A program made the position numbers and the translations under genes. The notes beneath the pieces were generated by a model. The model made no database searches. It was not told where the DNA came from and saw nothing but the letters and a program-made list of their open reading frames with translations. Of a stretch of DNA of 64,000 bases, positions 2,362 to 52,309 are shown one piece after another. How positions within the stretch are numbered: position 1 is the first letter of the stretch; every line of letters begins with the position of its first letter. Origin of the DNA: Mantamonas sphyraenae STR306 (taxonomy: Eukaryota; Protista; CRuMs); assembly GCA_026936335.1 (NCBI GenBank), contig JAPMXV010000060.1, positions 124,001-188,000 of the forward strand, written 5' to 3'.

Positions 2362-3789
2362 ATGTCCTCGGCCTCCAAGCTGGATCAGTGGTACGAAGGG
2401 GCTCAGGACTGGCTCAGGGACAGCCAGGTGTGCCTGGTGCTGCTGGGTCGTGGTGTGGGACGGAGTGAGGATCAAATGACCAGCTGGACACCGGAGCGAC
2501 TGGAGAGTGACAAGCGAGCACGTGCGCTGCGCGTTACCCACCGGCAAGTGTGGGACGCCGGCAGCGCCACAGGGAATCCAGAGGTGTTTTATGGCTTCTG
2601 GGGTGCCAGCGTCAATCAGAGTGCACACAAACGTTCGGAATCCGGGTCACAGAACAGCATGAGCACGTGGGAGGCGGTGGGCACTTTGCTCGAACGTTTT
2701 CAGGAACGCAGCCAACGGCACACACAGGAGGGCGGGGGCAAACACCCTCTGGAACAAGCTGGTGTGCGCGTGGCACCAGGAGGAAACAGAGACACACCCA
2801 GAGTGACCAATTGGTCATGCAGTGCCGATGAGAGCCAGGAGGACAAGGAGGACGAGGAATCGCTCACCTTGCAGGATTGCTTCGTGGTCACCAGCCTGCT
2901 GGACACAACGCCATTGACGCCGTACGGAGTCACAGACAAGCGGGTGTACCGTTTGGACGGCAATCAAAGGGAATGGGTGTGCAGCATGCAGTGCAGCGAC
3001 AATGTGTACAGGCTGGCAAGCGGCTACCGTTTCCATGTGGACAACGAGACCTTCTTTGCACCCAAGAGCGGCCCTCAGAAGCCCACCGGCGCAGTGGGTG
3101 AAGACAGGGATGATGCCATGGAGGATGTGGAGGGAAAGGAAGGGGAGGAGCAAGCGGTGGAGGAGACTCCCAATCACACGCCCCCAGGGTACCACCCTGT
3201 GCTGCGACCACACGGAGACATGGAGGAAACCACACGGGGAGGAGACACCATGTCACAGGACGAAGGCGAGGAGGAGGAGGACGCGGAGGGGGAGGATGAA
3301 ACGCCTGTGCGGAGGAACCTGAACGCGTCGTTCGACGCCAGCCAGATGGAGGTGGCCATCGACGTGGACACAAGAGGTAGGCCTGATGCGATCGAAGAAG
3401 AAGAGGAGGATGGGGACACAGAGAAGCGCAACTGGCCAATGTGTCCGGCGTGTGGAGAGCTGCTGCTGCCCAACGTTCGGCTGGAGGGTCACGCGGGGAT
3501 GCAGGAGGACGTGGATGGGTGGAAGGCGTTTGTACAGTGGCAAGTAGAGGTGTTGGGATGGGCAGTGCAGCAGCGCGAGGCCGGGGTGCAGGTGAGCATT
3601 GTGGAGGTGGGTGCGCTGGACGACGAACACCACCTTCGCGTCATCAGCGAAACCGTGCTGATGGAGGCACCCAACAGCAGACTCATACGGATCACAGAGG
3701 AGAGCCCGGCCAATGGCAACCTGGGTCAACGCACAATGAGTCTCAAGACGACGGGATATGCGAAATCTCTGGCGAGGCTGCTGCAATGA
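2362..3789 (+). CDS. Divergent SIR2/sirtuin-fold protein, probably catalytically inactive
   Basis: Sirtuin motifs appear in order but degenerate: VLLGRGVG, FYGFW, FVVTSLLD, RLDG..WVCSMQC, FHVDNET, PMCPACGELLLPNV, IVEVGA, RLIRI. All four Zn-binding Cys are retained. Confidence 0.75.
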   Translation: MSSASKLDQWYEGAQDWLRDSQVCLVLLGRGVGRSEDQMTSWTPERLESDKRARALRVTHRQVWDAGSATGNPEVFYGFWGASVNQSAHKRSESGSQNSMSTWEAVGTLLERFQERSQRHTQEGGGKHPLEQAGVRVAPGGNRDTPRVTNWSCSADESQEDKEDEESLTLQDCFVVTSLLDTTPLTPYGVTDKRVYRLDGNQREWVCSMQCSDNVYRLASGYRFHVDNETFFAPKSGPQKPTGAVGEDRDDAMEDVEGKEGEEQAVEETPNHTPPGYHPVLRPHGDMEETTRGGDTMSQDEGEEEEDAEGEDETPVRRNLNASFDASQMEVAIDVDTRGRPDAIEEEEEDGDTEKRNWPMCPACGELLLPNVRLEGHAGMQEDVDGWKAFVQWQVEVLGWAVQQREAGVQVSIVEVGALDDEHHLRVISETVLMEAPNSRLIRITEESPANGNLGQRTMSLKTTGYAKSLARLLQ

Positions 3790-3812: not shown

Positions 3813-6800
3813 TCATCCAAACACACGGACAAGGTTGTCAGCCGAAGCTGTGGCCAAAGCGCGATTTCCGAGGTCGTCGTCGAGAGCGGCCCATTGGCAG
3901 GCTGTGATGGGGCTTGTGTTGTCGCGAACCACGGCAGCTTTGCGTCCCGTGCGCACGTTCCAAATGTACACACCGTGCGCCTGGTCTGCATCATAGTCGC
4001 TGCTGCTGGCACTGTACACGTAGGTGCCCCCGGGGGAGAAAGCGGCCTTGGTGTGCCGCGACGTAAAGTATCCCGGGGAGCCAAACGTGGCAACCGGTCG
4101 GTTTGCATCGCCGCGGATGTCGAGCAGCTGGATGTCGCTCCAGTTGGCACTGGTGGCAAGGATGTAATGGTTGTCCAGCGGATGGATGCACACGCTTGTG
4201 ATGCGTGCATTCTTGGCGTCCTTGAGCTGCATGGTTTGCACCTGTTGCATGGTACGTGTTTTGTACAGGCGCACACAGCCCTTGGTCTGCGAGGCAGCCA
4301 GCAGGGAGCCGTGGGCGTCCAGGGCAAAGTCGGTAAACGGGGCGTTGGAGTTGATGCTGTGTGCGAATCCGTCACCCACCTGGACATCCCACAGCTTCAA
4401 CGAGTAGTCGGAGCTGCATGTGAGCAGTTTGCTGGCATCTGAAGGCAGCCATGCCACACGATGGATGGCATGTGTGTGTGCCTTGCGCAGTGTCATGCGC
4501 GCTTCGCTCTGTGTCCAATCCCACAGTCGCACGCTCTTGTCCATTCCCGTAGACACCAGCAGGTTGGGCTGTGCCGGGTTGAATGCTACAGACGTCACTG
4601 TCTTTGTGTGTCCCGTCAGGGTGCAAACTCGCTGGCCCGCCTGCAGGTCGTACACCTGCACTCGCTTGTCTTCGCCGGACGATGCCAGCACGTAGCTGCG
4701 ATCGTCATACAGCTCTGTGTGCACACACACTGTGCGCGGTGTCTTTGTATGACCACTGAACGTGCGATGCAGCTCGAAGCCACATGCTTCGTCCTCCTCC
4801 GGCACAGGCAGGGCCTCCTTTGCCGCCTGCTTGGATTTGTTTGCCGACCGCGCTGATGTCGTTGATTCGGCGTCCGATTCACCTCCAAACAGCAGTGCCT
4901 TGGGCGATGCGCCTATGCCTGCCTGTGCATGCGCTCCTCGACCCTGCTGCATGCTTGCTGTCGATCCGGGTGTCGATCCGGGCGTGTCCCACCGCTTCTT
5001 GGTGCGCTTCGTCTTGCCCTTGCCCTTGCTGCGATTGCTCTTTACCGATTCTTGGTCATCATGGTCGTCCCCTTCATCTGTATGCATGTCTGAAGTGGTG
5101 GTGGAAGTGGTGTTGGTACGTGTGCCGGATTGTGCTTCCCTGTCCTTCTCATCGCCCTGGTTGACCACACTTGCCGCTGGTGGAGGGGTCGATGGCAGCA
5201 CAAGCTGGGTGGGTTTGTGTTGCAAGCGGAAGCTGCCGTCTTTTGTGCGTTTGGGATACTCTGCCTGGTGCATGGCGCGTGTGGGCGTGTGTGCACTGTG
5301 CGAGTTGTTTGCTGCCACGCTGCCCGGCCGTTCGGGGTCGTTGGAAGCCAAGTCGGTGTCTGCCAAGTCGCGCAGCTGTGCTTCCAGCCGTTGGTAACGC
5401 CTGTGGAAGCGCACGAGGTCATCCACAGCCACGACGTCGCCGTCATCGCCTAAAAAGTATGCCTCCAGAATGTAGGCAAAGAGTGGGTAGGGTGAACGCA
5501 CCACCTTGCGCTTGTTCAACACACTGGCACTGCCTCCGGCTCCTCCCGAGCTGCGCACCATCTCCTTGCGCACGCGTTCGCCCGATTGCCAGAAGCGTGC
5601 CAGCTCCCGTCGCCAGCTCCAGTTGGCATACACGTTGCCACTGGCACTTCCGCCGCCATTCTGGGTGCTGTTGCTTCCTCCTCCGCTGGCCATGATGTCG
5701 GGTTGTTCCACGAGTGCCATGAGGTTGTTCTGATCCTGGGCAAACCACGCGCGGCGCTGAGGATCCTTCTCCAGCAGTTGGTAGCGTCCGATGACACCCA
5801 GCAGCAGCTCCTGAGCCATTTGTGTGCGTCCTTGTTCGATCAGGTGCAGCAATAGGTACTTGTTGAGCACGTACAGCAGATCGTCAAAGGCGCGTTGGAG
5901 GATGAGGTTGCTGGGTGCCTCCTGGCTGACTGTCTGTTGCACAAACTCAATGGCCGCTTCAAACTCGTGCCTGGCCAGCATGCGTCGCAGGGTACGTTCG
6001 TTGCGTCGATGACCACTGCCTCCCTGTGCCTCCCTCTCCAGGGCCTCCACCGTGTCTTTGTAGCCCATGCGCGTGCAGTAGTGGTGCATGGCAGCCACAG
6101 CCACACGATGCACCTCGTCACTGCTCGTCCCTTTGCTGGCAGCCCCGTGGCCACTGGTGTCACTGGTGCTGCTGCCCGATTCGCCCTCCGCGTCGCCCTC
6201 CTCGTCTTCGCCGTCACGAGGCAAAGGGGTGTTTACAGTCTGGCTCATTTGGGCCACTGCGGTCTGTAGGGCGTGGTAGCGTCCGATGGAACGCTCCCTC
6301 TCTGCGAGGCCGTTGTTGGCAAGGCGCATCTTCATGTCTTGGTTGCTCTGACGCAGCAGGAGCACCTCTGCGTTGCTGCGTGTGGCCTCCTGTTGCATGT
6401 GTTTGACACGATTGCGCAACTCCCGGTTGTCGCTGCTCAATTGTTCCACACGCTTGTCCAGCTTGACAATGGTCTCCAGCAACGAGTACTTGTCATCCAC
6501 GGGTGTGGTGCTGCTGCTGATCCTACTTGCTGCGGTCATCATGCTGGTGTTGACATTGTTCGTCGTCGTCGTTGTTGTTGTGGTCGTCCCCGTGTGTGCC
6601 AACAGGCCCTCCTGTGGCACGCCTGTGTCTGCGCTGGCATCAAACTCGGTGCTGATGCGTTTCTCAATCTCGTCCTGCAACAAACGCCGCGCAGACACTT
6701 CTGAAGCCGCCTTTTCGGGCCGGCTCCAGCCACGTCGCTTGCGAGAGGCCACGCTCTTCAGTTGGCGCCGTTTCACGTGTTCGGCCAGATAGGAGCTGGT

Positions 6801-7313: not shown

Positions 7314-7360
7314 CGCTCTGCGTTTGCGTCGGCCAGTGCACCTCAAACCCCACTTTCAAG

Positions 7361-7784
7361 ATGCATCTTCGATACTGCGAGGCCTGCGAAAAGTACACCA
7401 TCAAGGTGAGTGATGAGCGAGTGTATAGAGTGTCTTTCTGTGTGTGTGTGTTGTCTCTTGCTGGCCATGAGGAATGCCTGGACGAGGGACGGTGGCACCG
7501 GCAAAGGCAGAGGGTGTGAACTGCATGCCTGCTTGCACCGCCCGCTTTCCGGGCACACACGACTCGTTGGCGATGGCACAGGGCACACATGGGTGGCAGA
7601 CAGGAAGACGCAGAGCATCTGACACATGGGGTCACGTGAGTAGAAGGTGTGCAGCTGCGACGAGGCAACAAGGAGCGCACATCCCGCCCGCTTCAGCCCG
7701 GACGACCAGTATTCGCGTGAGCGCATCACCATCAAGAAGCGTTTTGGCATCCTGCCCACGCAGCAGGAGGAACTGAAGCTTTGA
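7361..7784 (+). CDS. NOP10: H/ACA snoRNP subunit Nop10, join(7361..7405,7644..7784), 61 aa
   Basis: Spliced translation [15 protein letters not shown]|[46 protein letters not shown] contains the Nop10 signature [21 protein letters not shown]. Intron: GTGAGT at 7406, CTGAC branch near 7619, TAG ending 7643. Confidence 0.95.
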
Positions 7785-14956: not shown

Positions 14957-16512
14957 TCAGCCCTCGGTGAACACCTTGTCGCTCTCCACCATCAGATCCT
15001 TCCACGTCGACGCCAACGACCCTCGCACATTGGATGGCTCTTGGTTCAACACTCGCCAATCGACATCGTCCTTCTCCTTGCCCTCCAGCAGTGCTGCGTC
15101 CTCCTGCCAACTGTACAATTGAGCACCCGTGCCACCGCTCCAAGGATCTGCAAAACGGGGGTTACGTGTGTGCATGTGTGTTAGCAACCCCATCCCTTGC
15201 CCCATCCCCATCGATCCATGGCCACACACCTCTGCCCTCGCCATTCCCTCCACACCCTCACCCACACCCACAACGCACTGATTTCAATCAACCACACACG
15301 GTCGTCCACCACTGCAAAGTCCACCACAGCGTTGTCCAGCTGCAGCTTGTCTCGCACATGGTTGTTGAAAAAGGTTTCCATCTGCTCCACCAGGTGTGGC
15401 ATCTGTGCCTCCAGCTCCTCAAAGTATGTCAGGCAATAGTACTGCGACAACGCCGTCAGCTTGCGTCCGTACACAAAGCCACGAAACTCCATCGACAGTG
15501 GAATCGGCTGCCACGCTCGCACGACAATCTGTGTGTTGAATGCCTGCTGCTCTTGTCCCTCTCCCTCCTCCTCGAGGCCATCCAACGCCAGTTCAAGATC
15601 CTCAAAGATCCTCTCGCTGTGCAGCAGCAGCACAAGCGCCTCCTCTCCACTCTCCACCTGATGGTCACATGATGATGGCAATGATGACAAAATAATGATG
15701 ATGCGTGTGAGTGAGTGATGGATTGACGACCGAGCGTGTGCACCCTCATTCCTCCACACATTCCTCCCACATACCTTCAACGCAGACAGCTGTGCCTCAA
15801 ACATGGCCACCAACCGCTCATTGTCCGACACATGTGTCTCTCCAGCCTGCTTGCGTGCCTGCATCTTGCTCAGAAACGTCTGCTTGAACTTGCGGTTTGC
15901 CAAGGTGACGTCCTTGGGACTGCGTGAGCTCATCTTGACGAATGCCCCGTGTTCCTTGCTCTTCTCCTCAAAGTAGGCCATGTGCTCATCAATTTGCGAT
16001 TGCAGTGTTTGCAGTGCCTCCCGGGTGTCCCGCGCACCCCCATCATCATCACCATCCAGCAAACCCACCAACCCGTCCACCGTGTCCAACAACCCGGCCT
16101 CTGTTTCCAATGAGTGCCCATCCAACCGGTTCACAAGCCCCTCCTCTCGGATTTGTTGGCTCATGTGTGATTTCAGTGCCGTGTGCACGTTTACAAAACG
16201 GCGTGCGTCGTCGGCACTGAGCTGCACGTAACGCGTTTCAAACGTGTGCTCCTCGTACGCCTCCAGCCACTCTTCGATGTTGGCCATGTGCACCCCCTTC
16301 TTGTAACTCATCACTTCCCTCTTGTCCACATACGCAGACTCGTCCGTCATCGGCGACGACCGGTCGTTCGAGCTCTGTCGTTCCAACTCCCCCGACTTTT
16401 TCAGCAGCGCCTCCAGGAACGACTGTGTGTGTGTGTGTGTGTGTGTGTCAGCATCCGTCTTTTCCCTTTCTCCATGCATCCCCAACCACCGTCCTCTCTC
16501 TGAACGCACCAT
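14957..16512 (-). CDS. CDC123/D123-like ATP-grasp protein, complement(join(14957..15147,15279..15657,15775..16422,16510..16512)), ~406 aa
   Basis: Motifs FVKMSSRSPKD, SERIFEDL, EFRGFVYGRKLTALSQY, VVDF, spliced WLIEI|NPW and TGAQLYSW. The two internal introns are well supported; the ATG-only first coding exon is inferred. Confidence 0.85.
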
Positions 16513-16552
16513 GGCACCCAACGAAACAACGAGAAACAATCACTTGGCAGCG

Positions 16553-27603: not shown

Positions 27604-30600
27604 ATGAGTGGCGACAAACCCATCGGTGGACTCAACCTGGGTGGGTTGTCGCGTCTGGACAATGACCAGCCAAGTACACCACGTAGGCAGAGCAGCGGCC
27701 TGTCCTCACAGGGAACGCAATCATCGCGCCGCTCTGCAAGCTCCAGGACATCTGAGAATTCAGCCGATGATGGAGAACAGGTTAGTGTCTTATGTAGAGG
27801 CAATTGGAAGCAAAATGTGGCGCACAGGAGGCGTTGCTGGGAAATGGCGGGTGTGTGGCGGGAAGCGCTTGAAATTTGACGAATGGCGGTTATTGGGTGA
27901 AAGCATGCGTGGGAGGGTGGAGAGGGACACTGGGAAGCGAGAAAAGGCTGACATGGATGCGGGATACACCCTCCATTCACAGGAGTCCTATGTACAAACT
28001 CGTTCGCAATCGCAGCCGCGGTCGGAACGGCAGGAAGATGCGGCAAAGAGGCGGCCAGAGAATGTGCGGCGCGAGCGAGGGCAACGGGGCATGGGTGGCC
28101 TGTCGCGGCCGCCGCCAACGCCGAAACGCAAGACAAAGGAAAGCTCCAAACCAGGCAGTGGGGCAGTGGGGCTCATGAATCTGTTCATTCCGCCCCCAGA
28201 GAGCGAACGAAGTCCGCGAGGGCGGACGCCTCGCGGCCAGGCGAGCCCACGAGGGAATTACAACCGCAACACGGGCGCAGAGGGAGGGCGTGGGGACAAA
28301 ACACCACGTTCCGCTGGAAGCAAGACGCCGCGGAGCTCAGGAAGCAGGACACCGCGGTCGACGGCGTCTCCGCGAGGAAGCAAGAACACGCGCAGCGGCG
28401 GGATCCAGTCCGAAGAGGACGACTCATTGGTGATGAGCCCCATGACACTGGACAGCGTGTCTGAAGACCGTGAAGATGAGGAGGCAGCAAGTGCTGCGGG
28501 AAGCGCAAACGCATATGGCGAGGTGAAAAGGAACCCCAATTTCCAAGGCTTTGGCAAGAAGAAGCAGGCTTCACCGAAGTCAACCACGACTTCCACGACA
28601 ACTACATCCACGTCTACACAATCAGCGTCGTCAACAGAGGATGACCATGGTAATGTGCGACGCAACCCGAACTTCCAGGGCTTTGGTAAGAAGAAGAGCA
28701 CGCCGAAGGAGGAGGAAACACCGAAGGAGGATGACCATGGCAATGTGCGCAGGAATCCGAACTTCCAGGGCTTTGGCAAGAAGAAGAGCACGCCGAAGGA
28801 GGAAGAGACACCGAAAGAGGATGACCATGGCAATGTGCGACGCAACCCGAACTTCCAGGGCTTTGGCAAGAAGAAGAGCACGCCGAAGGAGGAAGAAACA
28901 CCGAAGGAGGATGACCATGGCAATGTGCGACGCAACCCGAACTTCCAGGGCTTTGGCAAGAAGAAGAGCACGCCGAAGGAGGAAGAAACACCGAAGGAGG
29001 ATGACCATGGCAATGTGCGACGCAACCCGAACTTCCAGGGCTTTGGCAAGAAGAAGAGCACACCAAAGGAGGAAGAAACACCGAAAGAGGATGACCATGG
29101 CAATGTGCGACGCAACCCGAACTTCCAGGGCTTTGGCAAGAAGAAGAGCACGCCGAAGGAGGAAGAAACACCGAAGGAGGATGACCATGGCAATGTGCGA
29201 CGCAACCCGAACTTCCAGGGCTTTGGCAAGAAGAAGAGCACGCCGAAGGAGGAAGAAACACCGAAGGAGGATGACCATGGCAATGTGCGCAGGAATCCGA
29301 ACTTCCAGGGCTTTGGCAAGAAGAAGAGCACGCCGAAGGAGGAGGAAACACCGAAGGAGGATGACCATGGCAATGTGCGACGCAACCCGAACTTCCAGGG
29401 CTTTGGCAAGAAGAAGAGCACGCCGAAGGAGGAAGAAACACCGAAAGAGGATGACCATGGCAATGTGCGACGCAACCCGAACTTCCAGGGCTTTGGCAAG
29501 AAGAAGAGCACGCCGAAGGAGGAAGAAACACCGAAGGAGGATGACCATGGCAATGTGCGACGCAACCCGAAATTCCAGGGCTTTGGCAAGAAGAAGAGCA
29601 CACCAAAGGAGGAGGAAACACCGAAGGAGGATGACCATGGCAATGTGCGACGCAATCCGAACTTCCAGGGCTTTGGCAAGAAGAAGGTGACGTTGAACAC
29701 GAACAGCACAACCGGCGACAACAACGATAAGAAGCCAACTGCGAGCAAGGATCACGGTGAGGTAAAGAGGAATCCCAACTTTCGAGGCTTCAGCAAGCGC
29801 TCAGGGGCAAGCGCAGTGGCTCAACTTGCGCTTGGAAACGAGTCGCCAAGCTCAGAGAGGAGTGACGACGATTCTGGGAGCAGCTCGTCAGGGAACAGGA
29901 GAAAGGCAGGACGTACAAAAAGCAGGTTCCAGGATTTTGCCGGACTTGCGCGAGGCACGGGCAGATCTGGTGAGAAACCATCGACACTGAAAGAGGCGGA
30001 GATGCACATTGCTGCCTTGCAGGGAATGCACGACACAGTGATCCGTGAGCTGGATCACATGACCGGAAGCAGGGGGGCGCTGGTGGAGCTGCACCAACAA
30101 CACATGGCGCAGACCGTGGAGATTGCCACGCTGGCATCGTATATTCTGGACGCACGATCAACCGTGCATCGTTTGCATGAGCAGTACAAGGTGTTGCAGC
30201 AAAATGTGCTGGAAATGGGCCAGCCATCGACAGCCATCAAGGCAAAGACGGCTGAGCTTGTCAACCGTCTCGGCTTGCGGTTCGACGAGATGTTCACCAA
30301 TGGCCAACACTTGGAAGAGCTGGCCAACCTGATATCCAACCGCATCTCTGCGTTGCTGGACTATGCGCGGAGTGCGGGCGTACCACATGTGGAAGAGAGC
30401 ATCGCCGAGCTGCAGAGCCAGTGTGAGACCCTGTCTTTGACTGCGTTGCACCTAAATAACCAAGTCATCGAGTTCACATCGGGCAAGGAAGCACACGAGG
30501 AGGTGTCTGGGGCCATGCAACAGAAGCTCCTTTCGACACGGGAAGAGCTGGCGGAGTGCCTGGACCACCTGACAAGCAGTGTTAAGCAGCTGCAAGACGT

Positions 30601-33600
30601 CACCGAAGAGCGCGACGACCTGTTGGAGCTTCTGGAGCAGGTGCTGACAGACGCAGCGAATATGGAGCAGAATAGCGCGAGTGAACTGTTCCAAGAGTAT
30701 GATAGCCACCTGACGGAGGCGCACAACGCGTTGCTGCGCTTCCAGGAGTTGGCAGAGCAGCTGGAGGCAGAGGTGAGCAGCATTCGACAAAAGCACAAAA
30801 AGTTGCTCAAGGTGCACAAGCGCACAAAGGAGGACCTGGCGGCCGAGGTAGAGCGCAACGAGATGGAGGCAGAGTGGTCACAGTCGCTGAACACGCAACT
30901 GGAAGAGGAAAAGGCTGAAGTTCACAAGCTTCGCAAACGTGTGAGTACGTTGACCGAGGCCAACCTGGAGATGGAGGCGCAGATGCGACGGGAACGCAAG
31001 GAGCGGGCGGCAGCTGCTGCACAGATGCCTGCTGGCCTTCGAGGAAGCTCGGCGGCGATGGAACGTGCTATGGAACGCATGCAGGGATCGAGTGGACTGC
31101 GCAGGTCTGCCAGCACATTGATGCTGGCCGACACGTCGACATGTGAGGATTGTCAACGCGCAGTGGAACTCACTGGGGTGAGCAGTCTGTGTGAACTGCA
31201 CGATCCCAGCGAGAGCGCAGTGCCCGATCTGCGCAATCTGTTGCGTGCCAACACGCAAGGATCGCAGGTAGTGAGCGAGTCGACTCGGGAAGTGGCGACA
31301 GAGGTATCCAGCAAACCGCACAGTGTTACGACCTTGTCCCGGTCTTTATCGCGCGTAGACGATGAAGTGGTGGTTGTTGTGCGCAAGAGGCGTCGACGCA
31401 CGCAGCGACACAAGCATGGTGCTGTGGAAGCGACGGTGGAACAGCTGCGACAGGCGCACAAACAGTTGCAGGAGGCAGCGGAGCGCGAACGGGCGCTGGA
31501 GGAGCAGGTGACGGCCATGGAGGAGAACCACGAGGAGCTTCAGAAAGAGATCACGTTTGTGCGGCACAGGGAGGCGCAGAACAAGGCCATGCAGGAAACC
31601 AAGGTGGCGTTTGTACATCAACAGCTGGTGCGTGCGCAGAGGGAACTGAAGGACGTGAACGTGCTGATGCAGCAACGTGATCGACAGTTGAAGCACGCAG
31701 CAGCCCTGGTGGATCGCGGAAACAACATGCAGACGAAAGTGGAGGACTACATCCAGCTGCAGCGGCTGCAGGACGAGAAGCTGGCGAGCGCGACGCAGCA
31801 GAACAGCATCAGTAGGGAACGCATCCGGGAGCTGGAACAGCTGCTGCAGCAGGAAAAGGCTCACACAGAGAAGCTGAACAGCGAGCTGGACCAGTTGGAG
31901 CGTCAACTGGATGAGCAGATGGAGGAGAAGCAGGACAACGACAAGGAGGCGCCAGAGAAAGTGGATGTGAGCGTGGTTGCCAAGCTGCAAAGCACCGTGG
32001 AAGAGCTGCAGCGCGAGCTGAAGCGTATTGGGGTGGACAAAGCGGAGCTGACAAAGAGCAACGAGAGCTTTGTGGAGGAGCTGAAGAGCGTTCGTGGCCA
32101 ACACAAGCTGGTGCTGGAAGAAATGGAAACGCAAAACAGGGGTCTGGAAGAGCAGCTGGCAGCTCTGCGTGCACACGTGTTGCAAGTGGAAACCGACCGG
32201 GATGAGGCGCGCAGCCAAAACGAGGCGGTCGAACGCAAGCTGAAGGAGGCCGAGGAGGCACACGTACGTGCTCTAAACGAGTCCCAAACCGACACCAAGG
32301 CGGCGTTGGCCAAGGCTGAAACGACAGAGACGCAACTGGCGGCTGCCCTGGAACAAATCGAAACCCTGAAGCAAGGGGGTAACGAGGTGGACAAGCGCCA
32401 CGAATCAGAGCTGGCCAGCAAAGACGCACAGATTGAAGAGCTGCACCAACGCCTGGGGTCGCTGCAAAAGAAACACAAGGATTTGAAGAGCGAGCTGCAA
32501 GAGGTTCAGCAAGCGTCGAAAGAAGCGGAACGTGTGGCACGGGAGAGCAAGGAGGAGAACGAGCGGCTGGCGTCGAGCATGGCCAAACAGCAATTGGAAC
32601 TTGCGTCTCAGAAGGAGACACACGAGCGGCTGAGTGCACGTGTCGAAGCAAGCAACAAGGAGGTGAACAAGCTGCAGGAGCAACTGGCAACCTCGCAGAC
32701 GGCGTTGGCCGATCTGCAAAAGAGGTATGCGGAAATGGAAGCTCAACACAGCGAGCAAGCACAGAAAGCACAGCTGTACAAACAGCTGCTGATGCACGGG
32801 TCGTTATCATCCAAGCCAGCAGAACCGCAGAAAGGGAGCGGGGACACCACCGAGCAGAAGGAACAGGCAGATGAGGCAGGTTTCGTGTGCGCCACATGCG
32901 TGCGCAACGAGACATTGACGGGCGAAACCATGCTGTGTCCTGTGCATTCGCTGGAAGATGGAGAGTCGAGGAATAAGGAGCTTGCAGTGAAGCAACGCAG
33001 CCGTCAGCAGATGATGGCTGTTGTCACTTTGGACGAACGAGAAATGGAGGACAGTGAAATGGTCAGCGGAGCACCTGCACGCGTGCTCGTATCGGAGGGT
33101 CCCAAGGAGGAGAAGCTGCGCAGCGGAGCATCGAGCGTGACGTCAATTGGGGCAAAACGTGATCATTTGGAGCGCAGTGCTTTGGAAAGCGAGGTCGTGG
33201 AGCTGCGCATGCGAGCAGAGGAAGCACAAATCGAGGCGGCAGGTGCGCAGGAGGAGATCTCCACTCTGAAACATGAGCTTCAGCAGGCCAAGATGGGCAA
33301 AGAGAATGGGGAGACGGCCAAACGAGTACAGGAGCTTGAGGGTGTGCTGGAAGACACGCAGATGAGGCTGCGACACGCCAAGGAGGGGATGCTGTTGGTG
33401 GAGGCTGAGGTGAAGGAGGCACAGAAGAAAGAGGCAAAGGCACATATGGAGGCTGTGGATGCACAGCGGCGCGTGGAGGAACTGAAGGCAGAGGTGAAGG
33501 TGCTTAGGGAGAAGAACGAAGCGTTGGATGAAGCGCAGACGAGAATGCAGCAGAGCGCGACACAGGGACAGGAGGAGCTGGAGCGCCAGGTTGTTGCGTT

Positions 33601-36600
33601 GAACAAGCAGCTGGAAGAGGCAGAGGCAAAAGCATCGCGAGCCGAGGCATTGGCCAGCGAACGCGAAACCGCACTGGCGGCTGTGCAGAAGCAACTGACG
33701 CAGGCCGAGAGCAACGTAGAGGCTGCGAACGGAGCATTGGCAGAGCAGGAAAAGGCGGCAACACAGGCAAGGGCAGAAGTGGTAGAGAGCAAGAAACACA
33801 TTGCGGAGTTGGAGGGTGAGGTGCAAGTGTTGACGAATCGGGACCGGGTGGCACAGCGACGTCTGCAGGCACACGAGCAGGAGATTACGGAGCTGCGAGG
33901 TCGCCTGGAGCGCGAACAAGCAGAACACGGAGTGTCGCAGGAGCGTGCAATGTCTGTGGAGGAGGAACTGGACCGTTTACAGTCCATGCTTGCGCGAGGC
34001 GGTGGACGGGAGCGAGCCAACTCGGACACAGACGAGGCACGCGTGATCAAGAGGTCTCGCTCGACGCGATCGAGCCTCTCGGAGCGGGGACCGGAAGAGA
34101 TTGCACTGCTGAAGGAACAGTTGGAGAAGCAGCAACTGGAGAACAAGAGTCTGAAACGGCGATGCGCCCAGCTGGAGAAACAGGCGGCAGTTGCAGATGA
34201 CACGTGCCAAGGGCTCATGGCCAAGGTGGAGACACTGCGTCAGGAGCTAAACGGCATGCGAGCAGCAGAGAAGCTGCAGTGGCAGCGATTGGAGCACATT
34301 GGCGAACTCGAGGTCGGAAACAACACTGGGAGCAGCATGGTTGCCAAATCGCCTCGCCGACGCAACAGCATGAATGTGGACCCTCCCGCATCGACATTGT
34401 CGCCGAAACGACGCGGCAGTGCGACGGACGCGACGCCGTTCGACACGTTGTTGGCCCGCGTGGCAACGCAACGCAGCTCTTTCACACAGGCATTGGACGT
34501 GTACAAGCAACGTGTGGCCGACGAGAAGCACAAGCTGGAGGAGGTTGAACAGGAAAAGGACACGCTGCGACGGGAGCTGCGCCATATGGAAGTGGAGCTG
34601 GCGAAAGCACGTCACGAAAACACCGAGAAACAGAGCGCACTGGAGGCACGAACGGAGGAACTGAAGAAAGCAAACAGCAAAGCACGTGAAGTGGAGCGAG
34701 AGGCACGCACTGCGCTGACGGAGGCGAAGGAGTTGCGCGAGCAAGCCGAATCCAAATCGAGCAAGCTGGACAGCAAGACTCGGCAGCTGAAGGAGGCACA
34801 GGAACAGGTGGACGACCTGCAGCAGCAGGTGGACAACATGGACATCGAGATGAGCAGGCTGCGAAAGAAGAAGGAACGCGTGGATCGCGAGGTAGAGCGG
34901 CTGAACGAGGAAATCCAGGGGTTGCAAGAGGAGAACGCGGATGTGCGCAAGGAGAACCGCAGCCTGACGGACGAGAAGCACAGCGAAAGTGCACGTGTGC
35001 GCGAGATGGAGCGAAAGCTGGTGGAGGAGGAGCAGCAATGGTCGCACGAGAAGGAGTTGCTGAAGCAGCGTCTGTCGCGCGCCGAGCAGAGCGCGGAAGG
35101 ATCTGCGGAGCAGCTGAAGCAGCTGAAGGAAGAGAAAAACAATCTGGCGGAAGAATTGAAGAAGTCATCGGAGCAGCATCGACGCAAGCTGGAAGCGGAG
35201 CAAGCAAAGGTGACGTCGCTGCAGCGTCAGGCTGAACGTGCGGAGCAGGCGGCCAAGGAGAAGACGGCACTGACGGAAGAGCTTTCGAGTGTGCGAGGGC
35301 GGCTGGCAAGGCTCAGCGAGGACAAGATGCTGCTAGAGTCGCAAGTGGGCACGCTGGAGAAGGAAGTGAAGGAGCTAAGGGAGCGTGGGACACGAGAGGA
35401 CATGGTGGCGTCGGCAAAGTGGGACAAGGTACGACAGGAACTGGAGGGACAACTAAAGGAGCGAGACGTGCGTGTGAACCAGTTGCGACACAAAGAAAGC
35501 GAGGCGAGCCTGCGAGCAGAGACGGCGGAACAAAAAGCAGACAGCTTGTCGACGCGTGTGCAGCGTTTGAACGCACAGGTGTTGCAACTGACGGAAGAGG
35601 TGGAGGAAGCGCAGAAAGAGGCACGCAAGAGTCGCACCAAGGCACAGCAGGCGGAGGCGGAGCTTGCAGATGCACACACGCTGATGAACATGGACCGGGA
35701 CAAGCAGCAATCGGCCATCCAACGCCTGACACTGGCAAACGAGCGACTGGAGCGCGAGTTGGAGCAAGTCCGTGCCAAGGCCGACGCAAAGGCCCACGAG
35801 GCTGATTCGGTTGCGGATGAACTGCAGCGGGCCAGGCAGCAGCAGCGCAAGCGCTCTCGCGAGCTCACAGACGAACGAGAAGCGCGAGAAAGCGAGCTGA
35901 TGAACCAGCTTGCAGACGCGGAGCGCGATGTGAAGCAAAAGACAGGCGCAATGCAGAGACTGGAGGCCAAACTGAGTGCGGCCAATGACTCACTGGCGGC
36001 ATTGAAGAAAGAGGTAAAGGAACGGCAGGCAGAAGTGCAGGCAGCGAAGGAAGATGCGCGAAAGGCAACGGAGGCTTTGCAGGAATCACAGGCGACTCTG
36101 GAAGCAAGAATGGCAAAGCTGAAAGCAGAGCTGGCCGAGGCAAAAGAAGGTCAAGAGTCGGTGGCCCAAAAGGCCCAAGCGGCCCAAGAGGGGGTGGCGC
36201 GTGCGCAGGTCGAGAGCAGACGCTGGCGCAAGGAGTACGAGCTTCTGCGAGGTGTGTTGTCGGGAGCCCTGACGATGGACCAAGTGACGAAAGGGTGTGG
36301 ACTGTGTGCACGTGCACGAAAGGCGCTGGGCGACGCAGATGCGCTGTGTGTGGATCACGACATGGAGTTCTTTGAGGTTGTCGAAGGAGCCGGGGAGGCG
36401 AAATTGCTTGAACCGGAGACAATCAACACGGGTCTCATTGTCATCGGAGACTCGCGGGGACAGCACTGTGACCGTGAGATCATGGTGGTGCCATACCAAC
36501 CGGACGTACCGCAACGATCGGGCTTGTTGCGAGAGGCGCTGCGTGCACACCACCGCGCACACTCAGGACCGCACACACCGCGCCACGAAGATGCGTCGAG

Positions 36601-39600
36601 CATGCGATCCAGCCCCGTGATGATGCGTAAGCGTTCTGCGTCGCAGCACTCTGTGCTGTCGGTGGCGTCTGTGTCTTCCATGCACGACGGAGAAACCTCG
36701 CCCCTGAGCGCCGAAGTGACTTGGGCGTTGGGAGGACCCGGTGGCTGGCACCGGGATGACTCTCCGCCTTCTGGATGGCGCTCGCCGACCACGGGATCGT
36801 CGAATGTCCTGCGGCGCCTGTCGACGGCGAGTTCGGCCTCGCTCGCGCACGCGTCGTCTTTGGAGGAGGTGTATGCTGCGACCGACACGCCCGTTCACCG
36901 TCCGGTACAGGATGCAGTTGTCGTGCGCGGAAGCACGACACAACACCCACGGACGATGTCGGAATCTCCATTGTCACGACTTGCAGCAGAGACAGCGCGT
37001 CGTGGGTCGTTGGTGACGCGCACACAGATGCAACACGCAGTGGAGTCGACGAGCAAGCAGTTTGGCATGCTTCAAGAGATGTTTGGCGAGTTGCAAGAAG
37101 AAAAACAGCGCATGGAGGAGCTGCACGAGGAAGAGCTGGAAATGCTGCGTGCACGGTTGCGTGTGAGCGAAGAGGCACGCCTGCAGTTGAGGTCGCAAAT
37201 TACCGCGATGCGCTGGCGATCGGGCGTATCGGAGAAACGCATGGGCGAGATGCGAGTGGAGCTACAGCGCCACCAGCGTGTGCGCATGGTGATCGAGAGC
37301 GCGCACATGCAGCAGGGCGAATCACACGTGGAAGAACTTGCAGAGACAGCAGATGTGCTGGGCACGCTGCTACAGGGCGCCTTGGAGAGTGCCACGGCAT
37401 TGGAGAGCCGGGTTGCAATCTTGGAACACGAGCTGCAGCAGCAGAAGGCAAGGGCCACGGTGCAAGCGGATGCCCTGCGAGACGCCAGGGCTCGCGCAGA
37501 TCATCTGGACGCCCGCATGCGCAATTCTACGAGCAATAGCAGCAGAGGCAGCGAAAGCGTACGCGCGAATACCGTGGACACACACACGGACAAAATGGTG
37601 AAGATGCTGAAGGAATTGCGCAAGGAGCGGGACCACTGGAAAGCAGGTTGCCAGCGTGAAACCAGGCGGTCCCACACACACCTGGGTGTGGCACGCTTGT
37701 TGAATGGCCAACTTGAAGAGCAAGCCATGGTGGCAACAAAGGCACACGCCGCACTGCAAGAACATTTGGTACGCTCAGCCGAAATGACGCAACTTTCGGA
37801 ACGCGAGCGCGTGCGATCTTTTCATGACAGCGAGGCCCTAGAGATACGTCTTCAGCGCGCAGAGGCACGCTGTGAGGAGCTCGAGGGGCGCGTGAAGAAG
37901 CTGAACAAGACAGGCGCCCGGCGCGAGGCAAATGTCGCCGAAGCGAACCGGCAAACTTTGCGCCTGGTGGCCGCGCTACGAGAAAGCCAAAAGGCACTGA
38001 AGAGCAGCGAAGAGGCAGTGACACAGGCACAGGCCGAGGCCAAAGGAGCTAGCCACGGCGCTGAGGTGTGGCAAGAGCGAGCCAGCGAGGCGTCAGCCGC
38101 ACTTGAGAAGGCAAAGTCGGATCATGCATCGGAAGTGGACATGCTGAAACAACAGCTGACGGAACTGGACACCCTGTTGGACGAGAGCAGGGTGGCACTG
38201 GAGGAGCATGTGGCCAACGAGCGACGCGCGGAGGCGGAACGCGCCGCGTGGGTGGAGGAAAAGGAAGCGCTTGAGGGCAGGCTGGCACACATGCGCAAGC
38301 AACAGGCCCAGGCACAGACACAATGGCAACAGGTGTCCCGCAATCAGGTTGCCGTGATGGAGAAGCTGCGTGAAGAAAGCACGCATGCTGCAGCCGCGGC
38401 AGAGACAGAACACGAGGGGCGGGTGCTGATGGAGCGCGAGCTGCGAGAAGCACTGAAGACACTTGAAACGCAGCTTGAGTCTGCAAAGGAACAGATACAA
38501 ACACGAGAGACAGCGCTGCAGGAATCTCAAGGGCTCAACGCAGAGTTGCAGGAGGAGCTGAAGGAGCGGGAGGCCAAGCTTGTGGAGCAGGAGAAGAACA
38601 GCAGCGAGTCGGCACGCGCTGTACAGCAGCTGCGGGAACGTGTGCGCGAGGAGCAGGAAAAGAGACAGGCACACGAAAGCACCGTGCAGCAGCTGCGCGT
38701 TGCGTTGCAGAGGCAGGTGGAGAGCAACCGTGCTGCGGAGAAGAATGCCAAGGAGAAGGACGACGCAGTGGCACGGGACATGGAGACACTGAGGCAGGCA
38801 ATGGGCCAGCTTGAACAGGCGCTCCGTGGAAGCGAAGAGGAAAAGGCACAGATGGAGGTGGGCCTGCGGGAGATGCAATGGGTGATCGAACAGGGCCAGT
38901 CAGAGCGCGCTGCGATGAATCACAGCTTCCAGGGATTGGAAGTGACGCGTGCGACCATGGAGCAAACGATGCAGGACTACGAGCGCAAGGTGGCAGAGCT
39001 GCAGGCCAAGGTGCACGTGTTGGAGGAAAAGAACACGGAGAGTGCGTTGGCGGCCAAGGAGGCCAAGATGCAGCTGACATTTGTGGAGAACCAGTTGGGC
39101 GAAGAACGGGCACGGTCCAAGGAGAAGGAGATGAAGATGCACGTGCTGAGCGAAAGCCACATGCGTTTGCAATCGGACAGCCAACGCGAACAAGAGCGAG
39201 TGGAAAGGCGCCTGGGAGAGCTGGAGCGGGAAGTGAAAGAGGCGGACAAGCGGGTCCAGTTGGCAGAGCGCACAGCAGACAAGAGCGAGGATCAGGTGGA
39301 GCGTGAGAAGGAGCGACTGCGCAAGAGCGAAGAGGAGCGCGAGGAGTTGCGACGAGCGCTGCGTGCACGCGAAGAGGAAGTGGAACGGCTGCAGGAGTCC
39401 AAGGCGGCACTGACGAGACAACGCGAAGAGATGGGAGCGGACCTGGGACAGATGGCAGACATGCACGCACAAGACCAAGCGGCTGTGCAGGAGCTTGGGC
39501 ACAACTTGCGTGCGGCAGAAGAAGAGCTGATGCGAAGGGACGAGATGGTACGTGCACTTGCGGAAGAGCTTGAGCACACGAAACGGCGACTGGCGCATGA

Positions 39601-42600
39601 GATGGATGAGGATGGAATGGACGGGAGCGGGCGGCCATCCAGTGTGCGCGACCTACCGGCAGTGCGTCGCATGCGCGAGAAACACGCCATGGAGCTGGAG
39701 GAGATGAAAGAGGCAATGAGCGAGCTGGAGTTGCGAGCCAAGGCCATGGCTAGCGAGAACGAGGCATTGACAAAGCAGGTTGCCAAACTTGAGGAGAAGG
39801 AGCAGCGTCAGGAAGCGGACATCAAGGCACTGGTGGAGCACAAGCACGCGTTGGATGTGCGTGTGCAGTTGGGCGAGGCAGAGCTGAAGGCGACGAAGGA
39901 GCGGTTGGAAGGCAAAATTGGGGAACTGGAGGGACAGGTGTCGGAATGGCGTGCACGCGCAGATGAGGCCGAAGCTCAGGCACAGGTCTTGGGAGAGCAA
40001 GCAGAGGCGAGCGAGGCAGCGCGGGCCGAAGCCGTGCGCACGCGGGACGCGGCTGAGCAGAGCATGAAGGAGCGCAAGGAACGCCGTGATGGGCTGGAAC
40101 GACGTGTGGAATCGTCGACAATGCGCATCCGTGCGCTGGAAAAGCGAAACGAGGCTCTGGAGACGGCGAACCGCACCCTTGCCCAGCAGCTGATGGAAAC
40201 TCGCCAGGAGCTGGCCCACTCGCAGGAAGAGCTGGCGGCGGAAAAGGCACGTGGCGAAAAGGCAGCCGCAGAGAACCACGACGTGGTGAAGAGTGCAATG
40301 GAAACGAAGCAATCCCTGGTGCGTGCCAAGGAGGAGCTGGAGAACGGTCTGAAGAGTGCGAACCGCGAGTTGCAGGAGACGCGCGAAGAACTGAAGCATG
40401 TGCACGGCATGCTGGAGCACAAGTCGGAATCCATGGAATCCCTGGAAGCCGAGGTGGCACAGATGCGCGACGAATGGGAGGCTCGCGAGGCAGCGATTGC
40501 CCAGGCCACCCAAGAGGCAAACAGTGCGCAGCGAGAAAATGCACGCATGCATGCGGCCCTGGAACGTGTGGAGACGCTGCGGGAGCAGAAGCGCGAGGTG
40601 GCATGGCTGCACGGTGCTCTGAGACAATGGAGGCGGGTGGGACGCACGAGCGAGCAGAGGGCGACACACGCACGCTTGCAGTTGCGCAAGGCAAAGAGGC
40701 GACAGCAAATGGTAGAAGTGGCGTGTGAGGCCAAGGTGCGCGACATGGAGGAGAAGGAACGGGCGTTTGCACGGGCAAAGGAGGAGAACGTGCGCATGGC
40801 GACGCAGTGGGCTGAGGCTCAACGGCAGTTGGACTGGCTGTTGCAACAGTTGGGAAGCATGTATTACGCATATTCAGGTTGGAACGGCGAACAGAGGGTG
40901 CATGGATGTGATGCGTGCGCATCGAGGGTGGAGCTGACGGGCGACACGAGCACACGATGCTGGCGACACAGTGACGCGGAAGAGGCGGTCGAACGTCACC
41001 GACCGGCACAGTTGGACGTGGAAGTGCACATGGAAGCGTACGTGAGTGGCGGGGTCAACTCGCACCGGGCAGACGGGATGAGTCGCAAGACGCGCGCGGC
41101 AAAGCGGCATGTGCTGGACGTGCTCAAAGAGAATGACATGAGGAGGGCACAACGAGGCGCGGGACCCGAACCACACGTGAGCATGGATGCGGCTGTGCGG
41201 CACCGGATGGCACAGGCGTACCTGGACAGCGTGAGCCAGGCGATGACGGAGAACGCGCGCCTGCAACGGCAGACGCAACACATGCCCCGGAACCTGGAAG
41301 GGGAACTGCAACGTGCTTGGCAGCTGGTTCGTCAGGTGCAGCGGGAACTGAATGCGGAGCGCAGCGAGATGGAAGAGATGGTGGAGGATGTGCGTGAGAG
41401 CGTGGCAGCAGGTGTGGCCGTGGCTGGGCGCGTAGCCAAGCTGGTGGACAAGACGATGTGCATTCCCGAAGCTGGCATTGTACCGGGCATGGCTGTGGAC
41501 AGCCGTGCATTCTCGGCCGTGTGTCGTCTGAGCGAGGAGCTGCAGCGCGTCAGCTCGGGTCTGCTGCGCACCAATGCCACGCTGAGAGAACAGGTGGCCA
41601 TGGAAGCACAGGCAAGAGTACATGTGGAGGAGCGTGCGGCGTTGTTGGAGAGACAGCGAGCCGAAGCGGCTGAGCGATGCGCTGTGCTGAGCAAGACCTT
41701 GTCTGAGACGCAGTCCAAGGCATGGGCCAAGCAACACGCTGTGGACTCACAGGTGTGGCAAACAAGCATGCGCGCCCACACACTGGGTCGCATGATGACG
41801 ATGGAACGCAACCAAGCGGTGGAAACGAGCAGCCACGCACGTGAGTTGGAAGCGCAGACACACGAGCTCACGCGACGCCACAGGACAATGGCGACGGCGA
41901 TGGAGACGACTCGCATGAACCTTGCGGAAGGGAGCATGCACATCGACACTCTGTCTGCGATCCGAAGCCGGCTGGAGCAGGAGGTTGAGACGCAGCACCG
42001 AGGCGCAATGGAGACCAGGCGACAGTTGTCTGAGATGGAACGACTCGCACGTCAGTCGGAAGTGGAGCTGGAGAACACACGCACGCGGCTGCACCTTGTG
42101 GAGGAGAACAACGAACGGCTGCGAGGACAGTTTGACGAGATGCACCGAACGCAAAAGCAGTTGGCGAGCAAACGGGAGGAGAGCGAACGCGCACGCAAGG
42201 CTGCAGAAGAGGATTGCGAACGACTCCGCCGGGAGCTGGAAACGCAGCGGGAGGAACGTGCACGCCTGGGCCAGGAACGACAGGCGGCGATGGAACGTGT
42301 GGCTCGGCTGGAGCACGACTTGGGGGTGACACGAGACAAGCAACACGAGTTGTTGGAACGTCTGCGTGAAGACGCCCAGGCGCAAACACAGCGTGTGAAC
42401 GAGCAGTGGGAACGTCGTGTGGAGCGCGAGTACGTGGGTCGACTTTCTGTGCTGGAGCAAGAGCGAGACGACGCCATGGCCGAGGTGCGCACGATGGCGC
42501 AACAATGCCAGCAGATGGACAGAGAGCTTGCGTTTGCTCAGCAGGAGGTTGAGGACGCGCGCAGCACAAGCATGCGTCTGCAAGATTCGCTAGGATCGTC

Positions 42601-51600: not shown

Positions 51601-52309
51601 ACAGATGCAGAGCGAAATCGGACGGCTGACCCAGTTGCTGGGTAAGGACAAGATGATGAAGAGACTGAAGGAGTTGGAGGCCAGCAACGAGGAGCTGCAC
51701 ACACGCAGTGAGCATCTGGAGCGAGAGAACGTCCACTTGCAGCAGCAGTTGACCGGGAGCAAGATCAAATCGCGCACGGAACTGCAAATGCCGCTGGAAA
51801 AGGCGCAAGAGCGTGTGGCCGAGCTGGAGACACAGTTGCGTGAGCTGCTGAAGCGGATGGAGAACGAACAGCGACGGCGAGAGGCAGTGGAGGAGGAGTC
51901 GAGGTCGCTGCGTGCACACCTGGAACAGCGTGAGGATGAACTGAGGGAGCAGCACGCAGAGTCGGAACGATTGGGTATGGAGGTGGGACATCTGGAAGAG
52001 TTGCAAGAGCGCATGGCGGCTCAGGTGGAGGTGATGGGAGAAGAACGTGCGCACCTCATGAGCAAGGTGGAACGCATGCGCAGCAAGATCCGTGCCTTGG
52101 AAGAGCAAATTGAACGGGGTCCCTCGACGCTGTACAACTCGACAGCCACCAGCCGCAAGAAGAATGCCAAGAGCAGCAGCAGCAGCAGCAGCAAGAGTGG
52201 CAAGAGCAGGCTCGGTGCATCGGGCAATGTGTCGTCGACGTCCATTGGCAGCAGCAGCAGCAGCACAAAGAAAAAGGTGAAGCGCAAGGCACGTGTGGCG
52301 CGTGGGTGA
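27604..52309 (+). CDS. Giant (~8170 aa) coiled-coil protein, join(27604..27780,27983..52309)
   Basis: One uninterrupted 24.3-kb exon of E/Q/R/K/A/L-rich heptad sequence. The track's GTG start is replaced by ATG 27604 plus a phase-0 intron GTTAGT (27781)..CTGAC..CAG (27982). No motor or enzyme domain recognised. Confidence 0.9.
28638..29686 (+). repeat. Coding 90-bp (30-aa) tandem array, 11 full + 1 partial unit: EDDHGNVRRNPNFQGFGKKKSTPKEEETPK
   Basis: ATGACCATGG recurs every 90 bp from 28641 to 29631. Degenerate copies flank the array at ~28514-28563 and ~29753-29800. Confidence 0.97.

Follow-up and report, generated by a model that had tools for sequence, protein, structure and literature searches.

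Each chain of Rad50 contributes two Cys to the zinc hook, which lies directly at the apex of an antiparallel intramolecular coiled coil, and a second chain is needed to complete the Zn(Cys)4 site (PMC5093744). In NEMO, optineurin, ABIN2 and CEP55, the coiled coil is followed by a zinc finger of the UBZ type (PMC6817665). Here we describe a 20-residue Cys/His motif that occurs four times in a giant coiled-coil-like protein of Mantamonas sphyraenae STR306. The protein is encoded in a stretch of 64,000 nucleotides (contig JAPMXV010000060.1, positions 124,001 to 188,000 of the forward strand), hereafter called the window, and further copies of the motif are found in coiled-coil open reading frames (ORFs) on another contig of the same genome, labelled C49. 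In all, we find ten copies, of which seven are independent; they make up a small family distributed over at least three giant coiled-coil proteins of this one genome. A preliminary description of the window had proposed an unrecognised C3H zinc module that interrupts the coiled coil as a hinge, clasp or cross-link, is loosely analogous to the Rad50 hook and could be used as a handle for finding homologues of the giant. The position and novelty of the motif were borne out by our analysis, the zinc module and the handle were borne out in part, and the analogy to the Rad50 hook was not.

The giant ORF occupies window positions 27608-52309 on the plus strand and has 8233 codons counted from the first GTG, with the first ATG at codon 19. 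Its product is rich in Glu (15%), Ala (11.5%), Arg (10%), Leu and Gln. The first ~800 residues are rich in Pro and Gly, and this N-terminal, non-coiled part contains a 90-bp tandem array (28637-29686; 11.7 copies at 95% identity). The remainder is mostly a coiled-coil-like rod with interruptions. Positions 31000-36500 were present in one piece and with zero differences in three Logan contig sets, although the runs that match this region may be the source data of the assembly. Because the three sets are identical over this region, the ORF is not an artefact of one assembly. Four runs that cover these 5,501 letters represent the same strain, with no variants.

The four window copies (W1 to W4) were found where the preliminary description had placed them, with translations matching the peptides it quoted, and all four lie in the frame of this single ORF. 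Positions within the motif are counted here from the second Cys. W1 (31142-31201, plus strand, aa 1179-1198) and W2 (32888-32947, plus strand, aa 1761-1780) read C-x2-C-x12-C-x2-H, with Arg at +2 and Leu-Thr-Gly at +6 to +8. W3 (36296-36358, plus strand, aa 2897-2917) and W4 (40907-40969, plus strand, aa 4434-4454) have one more residue between the two pairs and read C-x2-C-x13-C-x2-H. The first half of W3, C-x2-C-A-R-A-R-x2-L-G-D, is most similar to the C49 copy at 281 kb. In W4, the Arg has moved to +3 and an additional His lies two residues before the first Cys, at -5. The columns that are invariant among the four copies are the two Cys of the first pair, a Gly eight residues after the second Cys, and the Cys and His of the second pair. 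An Arg at +2 and a Leu-Thr directly in front of the Gly are nearly constant. Conserved residues are encoded by different codons in different copies (TGT/TGC, CTC/TTG/CTG, ACT/ACG, GGG/GGC and CAC/CAT), and a masked self-BLAST of the giant revealed no off-diagonal similarity at E ≤ 0.001. Since the codons differ and there is no other internal similarity, W1 to W4 are old and have been maintained at the protein level; they are no recent DNA repeat.

The giant is otherwise poor in Cys, as had been claimed. It contains only 40 Cys (0.49%), 12 of which belong to the four motifs, and its only C-x2-C pairs (n=4) are those of the motifs. When Cys and His were placed at random 20,000 times, the mean was 0.00015 full motifs and 0.19 C-x2-C pairs per protein, compared to four and four observed. 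These results strongly suggest that the motif is a real, selected element.

Rod and gap boundaries were drawn using a crude heptad score written for this analysis. By this score, all four copies lie in non-heptad linkers that are richer in Pro and Gly, in agreement with the proposal that they fall at breaks in the coiled coil. Each copy starts 22-46 residues inside its non-heptad gap, the gaps being 139-312 residues long, and the next heptad segment follows after 90-275 residues. W1 lies 46 residues from the start of its linker (31004-31420, aa 1133-1271), W2 31 residues from the start of its own (32795-33442, aa 1730-1945), W3 35 residues into a Ser/Pro-rich linker (36191-37126, aa 2862-3173) and W4 22 residues into the last (40841-41287, aa 4412-4560), all on the plus strand. 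The order is the same at every window copy: a rod is followed by a short spacer, the motif, an acidic stretch, a long linker and then the next rod. The long linker after each copy is probably disordered. The giant also has gaps that carry no motif, at about aa 2050-2280, 3200-3400, 5280-5580 and 7356-7514.

A search with a profile of the four window copies gave one weak additional match, in another long coiled-coil ORF on C49. The copies on this contig were located by degenerate DNA patterns run over the whole compact genome (25 Mb, 78 contigs, 59% G+C) and then by reading the region. Six additional copies were found on the C49 minus strand, in a collinear run of coiled-coil ORFs that extends from 239,890 to beyond 291,499. 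Four of the six are near-identical, with first Cys codons at 243732, 252091, 253525 and 255160; the others are at 262420, in an ORF of 3613 codons, and at 281401. The C49 copies are placed like those of the window: a helical stretch ends, and the motif, an acidic stretch and a linker rich in Gly and Ser follow in that order. In the ORF of 3613 codons, the copy at 262420 is 75 residues away from the stop, at the very end of the rod. This ORF and the window giant also have similar C-terminal ends (C49:262193-262420 and window 51900-52309), each with a Ser-rich stretch and then a short basic tail, which is a second feature common to these rods besides the motif.

The core common to the window and C49 copies is C-x2-C-x-R-x3-[L/M]-[T/L]-G. 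A strict pattern, C-x2-C-x5-[L/F]-T-G, had 21 matches genome-wide, eight of them in the 76 kb of the giants, where 0.03 were expected (Poisson P (≥5) = 2.7e-10). Those matches elsewhere that were checked lay in non-coding frames, apart from one ordinary AN1 finger. Loose DNA patterns gave genome-wide counts equal to those of their controls. Searches for more copies in the genome, using single-copy protein queries and C-x2-C-A-R-A-R patterns, returned only the known copies and chance frames. BLAST of the window giant against the C49 ORFs detected no similarity besides the motif. Because the giants share nothing else that BLAST can detect, the motif has been kept as the rods diverged.

In structural zinc sites, Cys and His can replace each other and a nearby His can make up for a lost ligand, which does not hold for disulfides or lipidation sites. 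Window copies have Cys, Cys, Cys (+13 or +14) and His (+16 or +17). On C49, the first pair is followed by two His, at +13 and +14, in the four repeated copies and by His at +15 in the copy at 262420, and the copy at 281401 combines Cys at +13 with Trp in place of the last His. All six C49 copies carry H-x4-C, with a His five residues before the first Cys (-8). In each of the ten copies, at least four Cys/His fall within 44 residues, the third ligand being Cys at +13/+14 or His at +13/+15. The copies show the generic features of a structural zinc site, namely four Cys/His, two close pairs and Cys/His exchange across copies. Because the third and fourth ligands swap from Cys to His or move, yet at least four Cys/His are kept, the motif is better read as a metal site than as a disulfide. 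A small zinc site is the most economical reading of these sequences, and to this extent the proposed C3H zinc module stands. The C3H composition does not define the family, since C49 copies variously have His in place of the third Cys, lack the last His or carry an additional His upstream.

The explanation that we favour, and to which we give about an even chance, is that the motif is a one-zinc module, self-contained and restricted to this lineage, with which rod segments end. The analysis shows that the motif exists, that it is not random, that it forms a family and where it sits, and that its ligands are swapped; its metal binding, its closure within a single chain, its fold and any partner are inferred. 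Each copy would form a self-contained metal-binding module of about 20-30 residues, with Zn2+ the most likely metal. Two ligands would be provided by C-x2-C and two more by the Cys/His pair 13-17 residues later, and in some paralogues a ligand would be provided instead by the His five residues before the first Cys. The x-R-x3-[L/M]-[T/L]-G between the pairs would probably adopt a short helix or a hairpin ended by the invariant Gly. The module would belong to a lineage-restricted family common to several otherwise unalignable giants of this genome, and would be placed shortly after a rod end, internally before a long flexible linker and once at the C-terminal end of a rod. It may act as a knot, stabilised by zinc, through which the otherwise disordered linker gains one small folded surface. 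This surface could be a docking point, or a cap and register mark for the preceding rod, in a position like that of the UBZ-type fingers behind the coiled coils of NEMO or CEP55.

Several results weigh against this explanation. No homologue was found outside this genome by the word-index, 1.84-billion profile and metagenome pattern searches described below. The four near-identical C49 copies are recent duplicates, leaving seven independent copies rather than ten. The gene boundaries on C49 are uncertain owing to frame changes and an in-frame stop. Over 52 kb of the minus strand (C49:239890-291499), collinear coiled-coil ORFs with lengths of 735 to 3613 codons are separated by frame changes, with a single in-frame TAG (246208-246210) between two long ORFs that share one frame, and the downstream part of the run is built of repeats that are 64-98% identical. 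Real stops, introns or assembly indels could each account for the breaks. The fourth ligand is at no fixed position across the paralogues, and some copies may be degenerate or may bind differently. Models were calculated with AlphaFold2 on the five-copy and ten-copy alignments. They had a mean predicted local distance difference test (pLDDT) score of 59 and showed no closed site. The only feature common to the two runs, a helix beginning at C-x2-C and stopping short of the invariant Gly (pLDDT 70-74), counts in favour of the module. AlphaFold 3, for its part, gives confident zinc-finger structures even for random sequences of similar size, as outlined in a preprint (10.1101/2025.06.19.660640).

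The motif had been described as unrecognised as a named domain, and it remains so: no Pfam model, solved structure or protein among 1.84 billion matches it. Pfam zinc-finger models, including C2H2, UBZ and AN1, gave no match even at E ≤ 10 against the two halves of the giant or against any single copy. Pfam run at E ≤ 0.1 on the whole giant found no family, apart from one sub-threshold chance match, and no Rad50 hook. Profiles of the copies searched against all PDB sequences gave nothing significant. The best matches were to C2H2 fingers, those of ADR1 (E = 0.055, over 10 residues that cover only C-x2-C-x-R-A) and Zif268, and weak, chance-level matches were also seen to the HMA domains of CopA and glutaredoxins. 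Feature searches of the ESM Atlas related W3 to DEAD_2 fragments (0.94, with low recognition) and W1 to nothing; this lead was dropped as not reproducible.

One alternative is that the motif is a diverged remnant of a known finger, either a beta-beta-alpha finger of the C2H2/UBZ type or the first site of a ZFAND/SAP-type AN1 finger, which would act as a receptor for ubiquitin or another partner at rod ends. This alternative overlaps with our favoured explanation, and we consider it unlikely. The spacing is nearly that of classical C2H2 and UBZ fingers (C-x2-C-x12-H-x3-5-H/C), some C49 copies have His at +13 as third ligand, and one copy reads C-P-I-C-x-R-N-F, similar to fingers of the Zif268 type. 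The best PDB matches, non-significant as they are, are to C2H2 fingers. Like the classical C2H2 finger (PF00096), the motif has C-x2-C-x-R/K near its start and the third ligand at +13. In contrast to that finger, it lacks the Phe/Leu core positions, the H-x3-5-H pair, the array and the TGEKP linker. The low-confidence AlphaFold2 models also place a helix right after C-x2-C, in contrast to the strand and turn found there in a beta-beta-alpha finger, and leave the second half undefined.

The resemblance to UBZ-type fingers (NEMO, optineurin, ABIN2, CEP55 and NDP52/TAX1BP1) extends to position. Both are small one-zinc modules (25-30 residues), established in the fingers and putative in the motif, that follow a coiled coil, dimeric in the case of the fingers. 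Both have mixed Cys/His ligands and the spacing C-x2-C-x12 to the third ligand, and one C49 copy closes its rod at the C-terminal end, as the fingers do. The placing of the fingers after coiled coils (PMC6817665) thus counts in favour of a diverged finger. However, the motif matches no C2H2 or UBZ model, its last pair is C/H-x2-H rather than the H-x3-5-H/C of the fingers, it occurs several times inside one protein, and the ubiquitin-binding residues cannot be aligned. By analogy, the UBZ-type finger is the nearest working analogue in position and size, and membership of that family is not supported.

The genome itself encodes six AN1 fingers, all with eight ligands, of which only one is of the ZFAND/SAP type, the other five belonging to another subtype. 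This one finger (C53:150271-150384, plus strand, in an 85-codon open frame) reads C-x2-C-K-R-x3-F-T-G, and its site-1 ligands, as assigned from AN1 structures, are C, C and C-x2-H. The motif resembles the ZFAND5/SAP subtype of AN1 (PF01428) in its first-site ligand set and in its local sequence, C-x2-C-x-[K/R]-x3-[L/F]-T-G followed by C-x2-H. The eight AN1 ligands, C-x2-C-x9-12-C-x1-2-C-x4-C-x2-H-x5-H-x-C, form two zinc sites; the motif has only the four that resemble site 1, and the second site (C-x-C, H-x-C) is wholly absent. The likeness is to one subtype only and may be convergent. An hhalign comparison of the motif copies with the six AN1 fingers gave a probability of 0.5% (E = 0.12, 7 columns), with no Pfam match. 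Short Cys/His patterns converge easily, which also counts against a diverged finger of either type.

Just as unlikely, in our judgement, is that the motif is not a zinc site at all and is instead a short linear motif, such as a redox C-x2-C, a copper- or Fe-S-binding site, a lipidation site or a docking peptide. In the AlphaFold2 models the C-x2-C is at the N-terminus of a helix, which is the geometry of thioredoxin, glutaredoxin and HMA motifs, and the chance-level matches to the CopA HMA domains and glutaredoxins point the same way. However, those matches are far from significant and cover C-x2-C only. A 2Fe-2S cluster bound by three Cys and one His is found in mitoNEET-type proteins. The C2H2-like ligand sets of the C49 copies would be unusual for Fe-S clusters. 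Redox activity or lipidation explains neither the second pair nor the exchange of Cys for His, as His is neither a disulfide partner nor a lipid acceptor.

A third alternative retains the zinc and closes the site between chains. One zinc ion would be coordinated jointly by the C-x2-C of a first chain and the C/H pair of a second, the second chain being either the partner in a parallel dimer or a different giant, so that chains or fibres would be riveted together in the manner of the Rad50 hook but without membership of its family. The ligands do fall into two separable pairs, the motif is common to different giants of one genome, which suits heterotypic joining, and the Rad50 hook demonstrates that zinc bridging between proteins at coiled coils exists (PMC5093744). 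The motif and the Rad50/SbcC hook (PF04423) are alike in that a C-x2-C, metal-binding in the hook and putatively so in the motif, breaks up a very long coiled coil, and would be alike in coupling metal binding to the folding of a short segment. They differ in that each copy of the motif has at least four ligands, only 13-17 residues apart, enough for a closed site in one chain as is usual for such spacing. They differ further in that the motif occurs in several copies per protein and without an ATPase, whereas the hook is part of an ATPase of the SMC kind. The hook is also directly at the apex between two matched arms, whereas the motif is asymmetrically placed 22-46 residues after a rod and is followed by 90-275 residues of linker. 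The PF04423 model scored only 12.4 bits on the C49 copy at 262 kb, compared to a cut-off of 24.3 (E = 0.15), covering C-P-x-C alone, and detected nothing at E ≤ 10 in the other nine of the ten copies. These results argue against the proposed analogy to the Rad50 hook, and we regard an inter-chain clasp as rather improbable. A bolder form of the idea, which we would call a long shot, is that zinc ions shared by half-sites of different chains or different giants bind the rods together in a heteropolymeric fibre, with assembly governed by the availability of zinc.

A chance pattern or an assembly or annotation artefact, for which only the general frequency of C-x2-C in proteomes and the control-level counts of the loose patterns could speak, is refuted by the counts given above for random placement and for concentration in the giants, by the identity of the three contig sets over 5.5 kb, and by the open frame of 24.7 kb at 59% G+C, which chance cannot produce, and it deserves practically no weight.

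Relatives of the motif were sought outside this genome in three ways, in collections from which records of this genome are excluded. For the word-index protein searches, the queries were residues 1100-4500 of the giant and a 751-residue piece containing W1 and W2, and neither found anything at E ≤ 0.001 or 0.01. An exhaustive HMMER search with a five-copy profile against 1.84 billion representatives, a library that does not contain the giant itself, found no real relative at the limit of E ≤ 0.001, below which a single diverged copy would score, so that only close or multi-copy relatives are excluded. Three matches from this search were rejected: they were tandem-repeat, Ig-like or Cna-B-like proteins that aligned only with profile positions 17-34, without the C-x2-C. 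A W1/W2-type pattern run over JGI/ENA metagenome contigs gave 65 loci, approximately the chance expectation, none of the 65 being in a coiled-coil-like ORF by a single automatic screening pass; one locus came from a record titled human gut metagenome. As a handle for homologues, the motif thus led to six further copies inside the same genome and to nothing outside it.

The distance of the available relatives was gauged from a conserved housekeeping protein in the window. The CDC123 (D123) homologue at 15181-16539 on the minus strand is 22-42% identical to its database matches and 27-35% identical to the best-scoring of them. The matches come from molluscs, amoebozoans, an apusomonad and others, which are widely separated eukaryote groups. 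Because even CDC123 reaches only 22-42% identity, a close relative of this genome is absent from the databases, and because the database relatives are so distant, orthologues of a fast-evolving rod protein would not be recognisable there. The CDC123 ORF, at 452 codons, is longer than most of its database matches, which are mostly about 250-450 aa.

Giant coiled-coil proteins are nearly featureless and fast-evolving, and are very hard to relate to each other or to a function. The motif is the only conserved element between at least three such proteins in one genome and therefore marks them as one system. It also provides a short peptide on which metal binding, oligomeric state and partners are directly testable. 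Should it bind zinc, the few small zinc modules that punctuate coiled coils, the Rad50 hook and the UBZ fingers, would be joined by an undescribed one. Bridging between chains, if it occurs, would make the motif a rare example of metal-mediated fibre assembly, and zinc rivets between giants would be a second, independently evolved zinc bridging at coiled coils after the Rad50 hook, in a cytoskeleton-like system. The value of the motif is limited in that the family so far comes from one genome only and its chemistry is one that we infer.

The neighbouring genes in the window are eukaryotic and mostly uninterrupted. In addition to the CDC123 homologue, they encode an RCC1-DH-PH-MORN protein, an inositol 5-phosphatase, an SNF2 helicase and a sedolisin. 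Two further observations were made elsewhere in the genome. The C-x2-C-A-R-A-R pattern search returned an identical 23-base word, which in one frame reads C-E-L-C-A-S-A-R, at a minimum of eight places on many contigs, including C14:84546, C17:158689, C29:73200, C40:136071, C41:144269, C44:19682 and C58:329522. This word is probably part of a dispersed repeat or mobile element. Three near-identical C-x2-C stretches were also seen within 20 kb on both strands of C22 (170466-170500, plus strand; 185999-186033 and 189590-189624, both minus strand), which suggests a locally duplicated gene or repeat.

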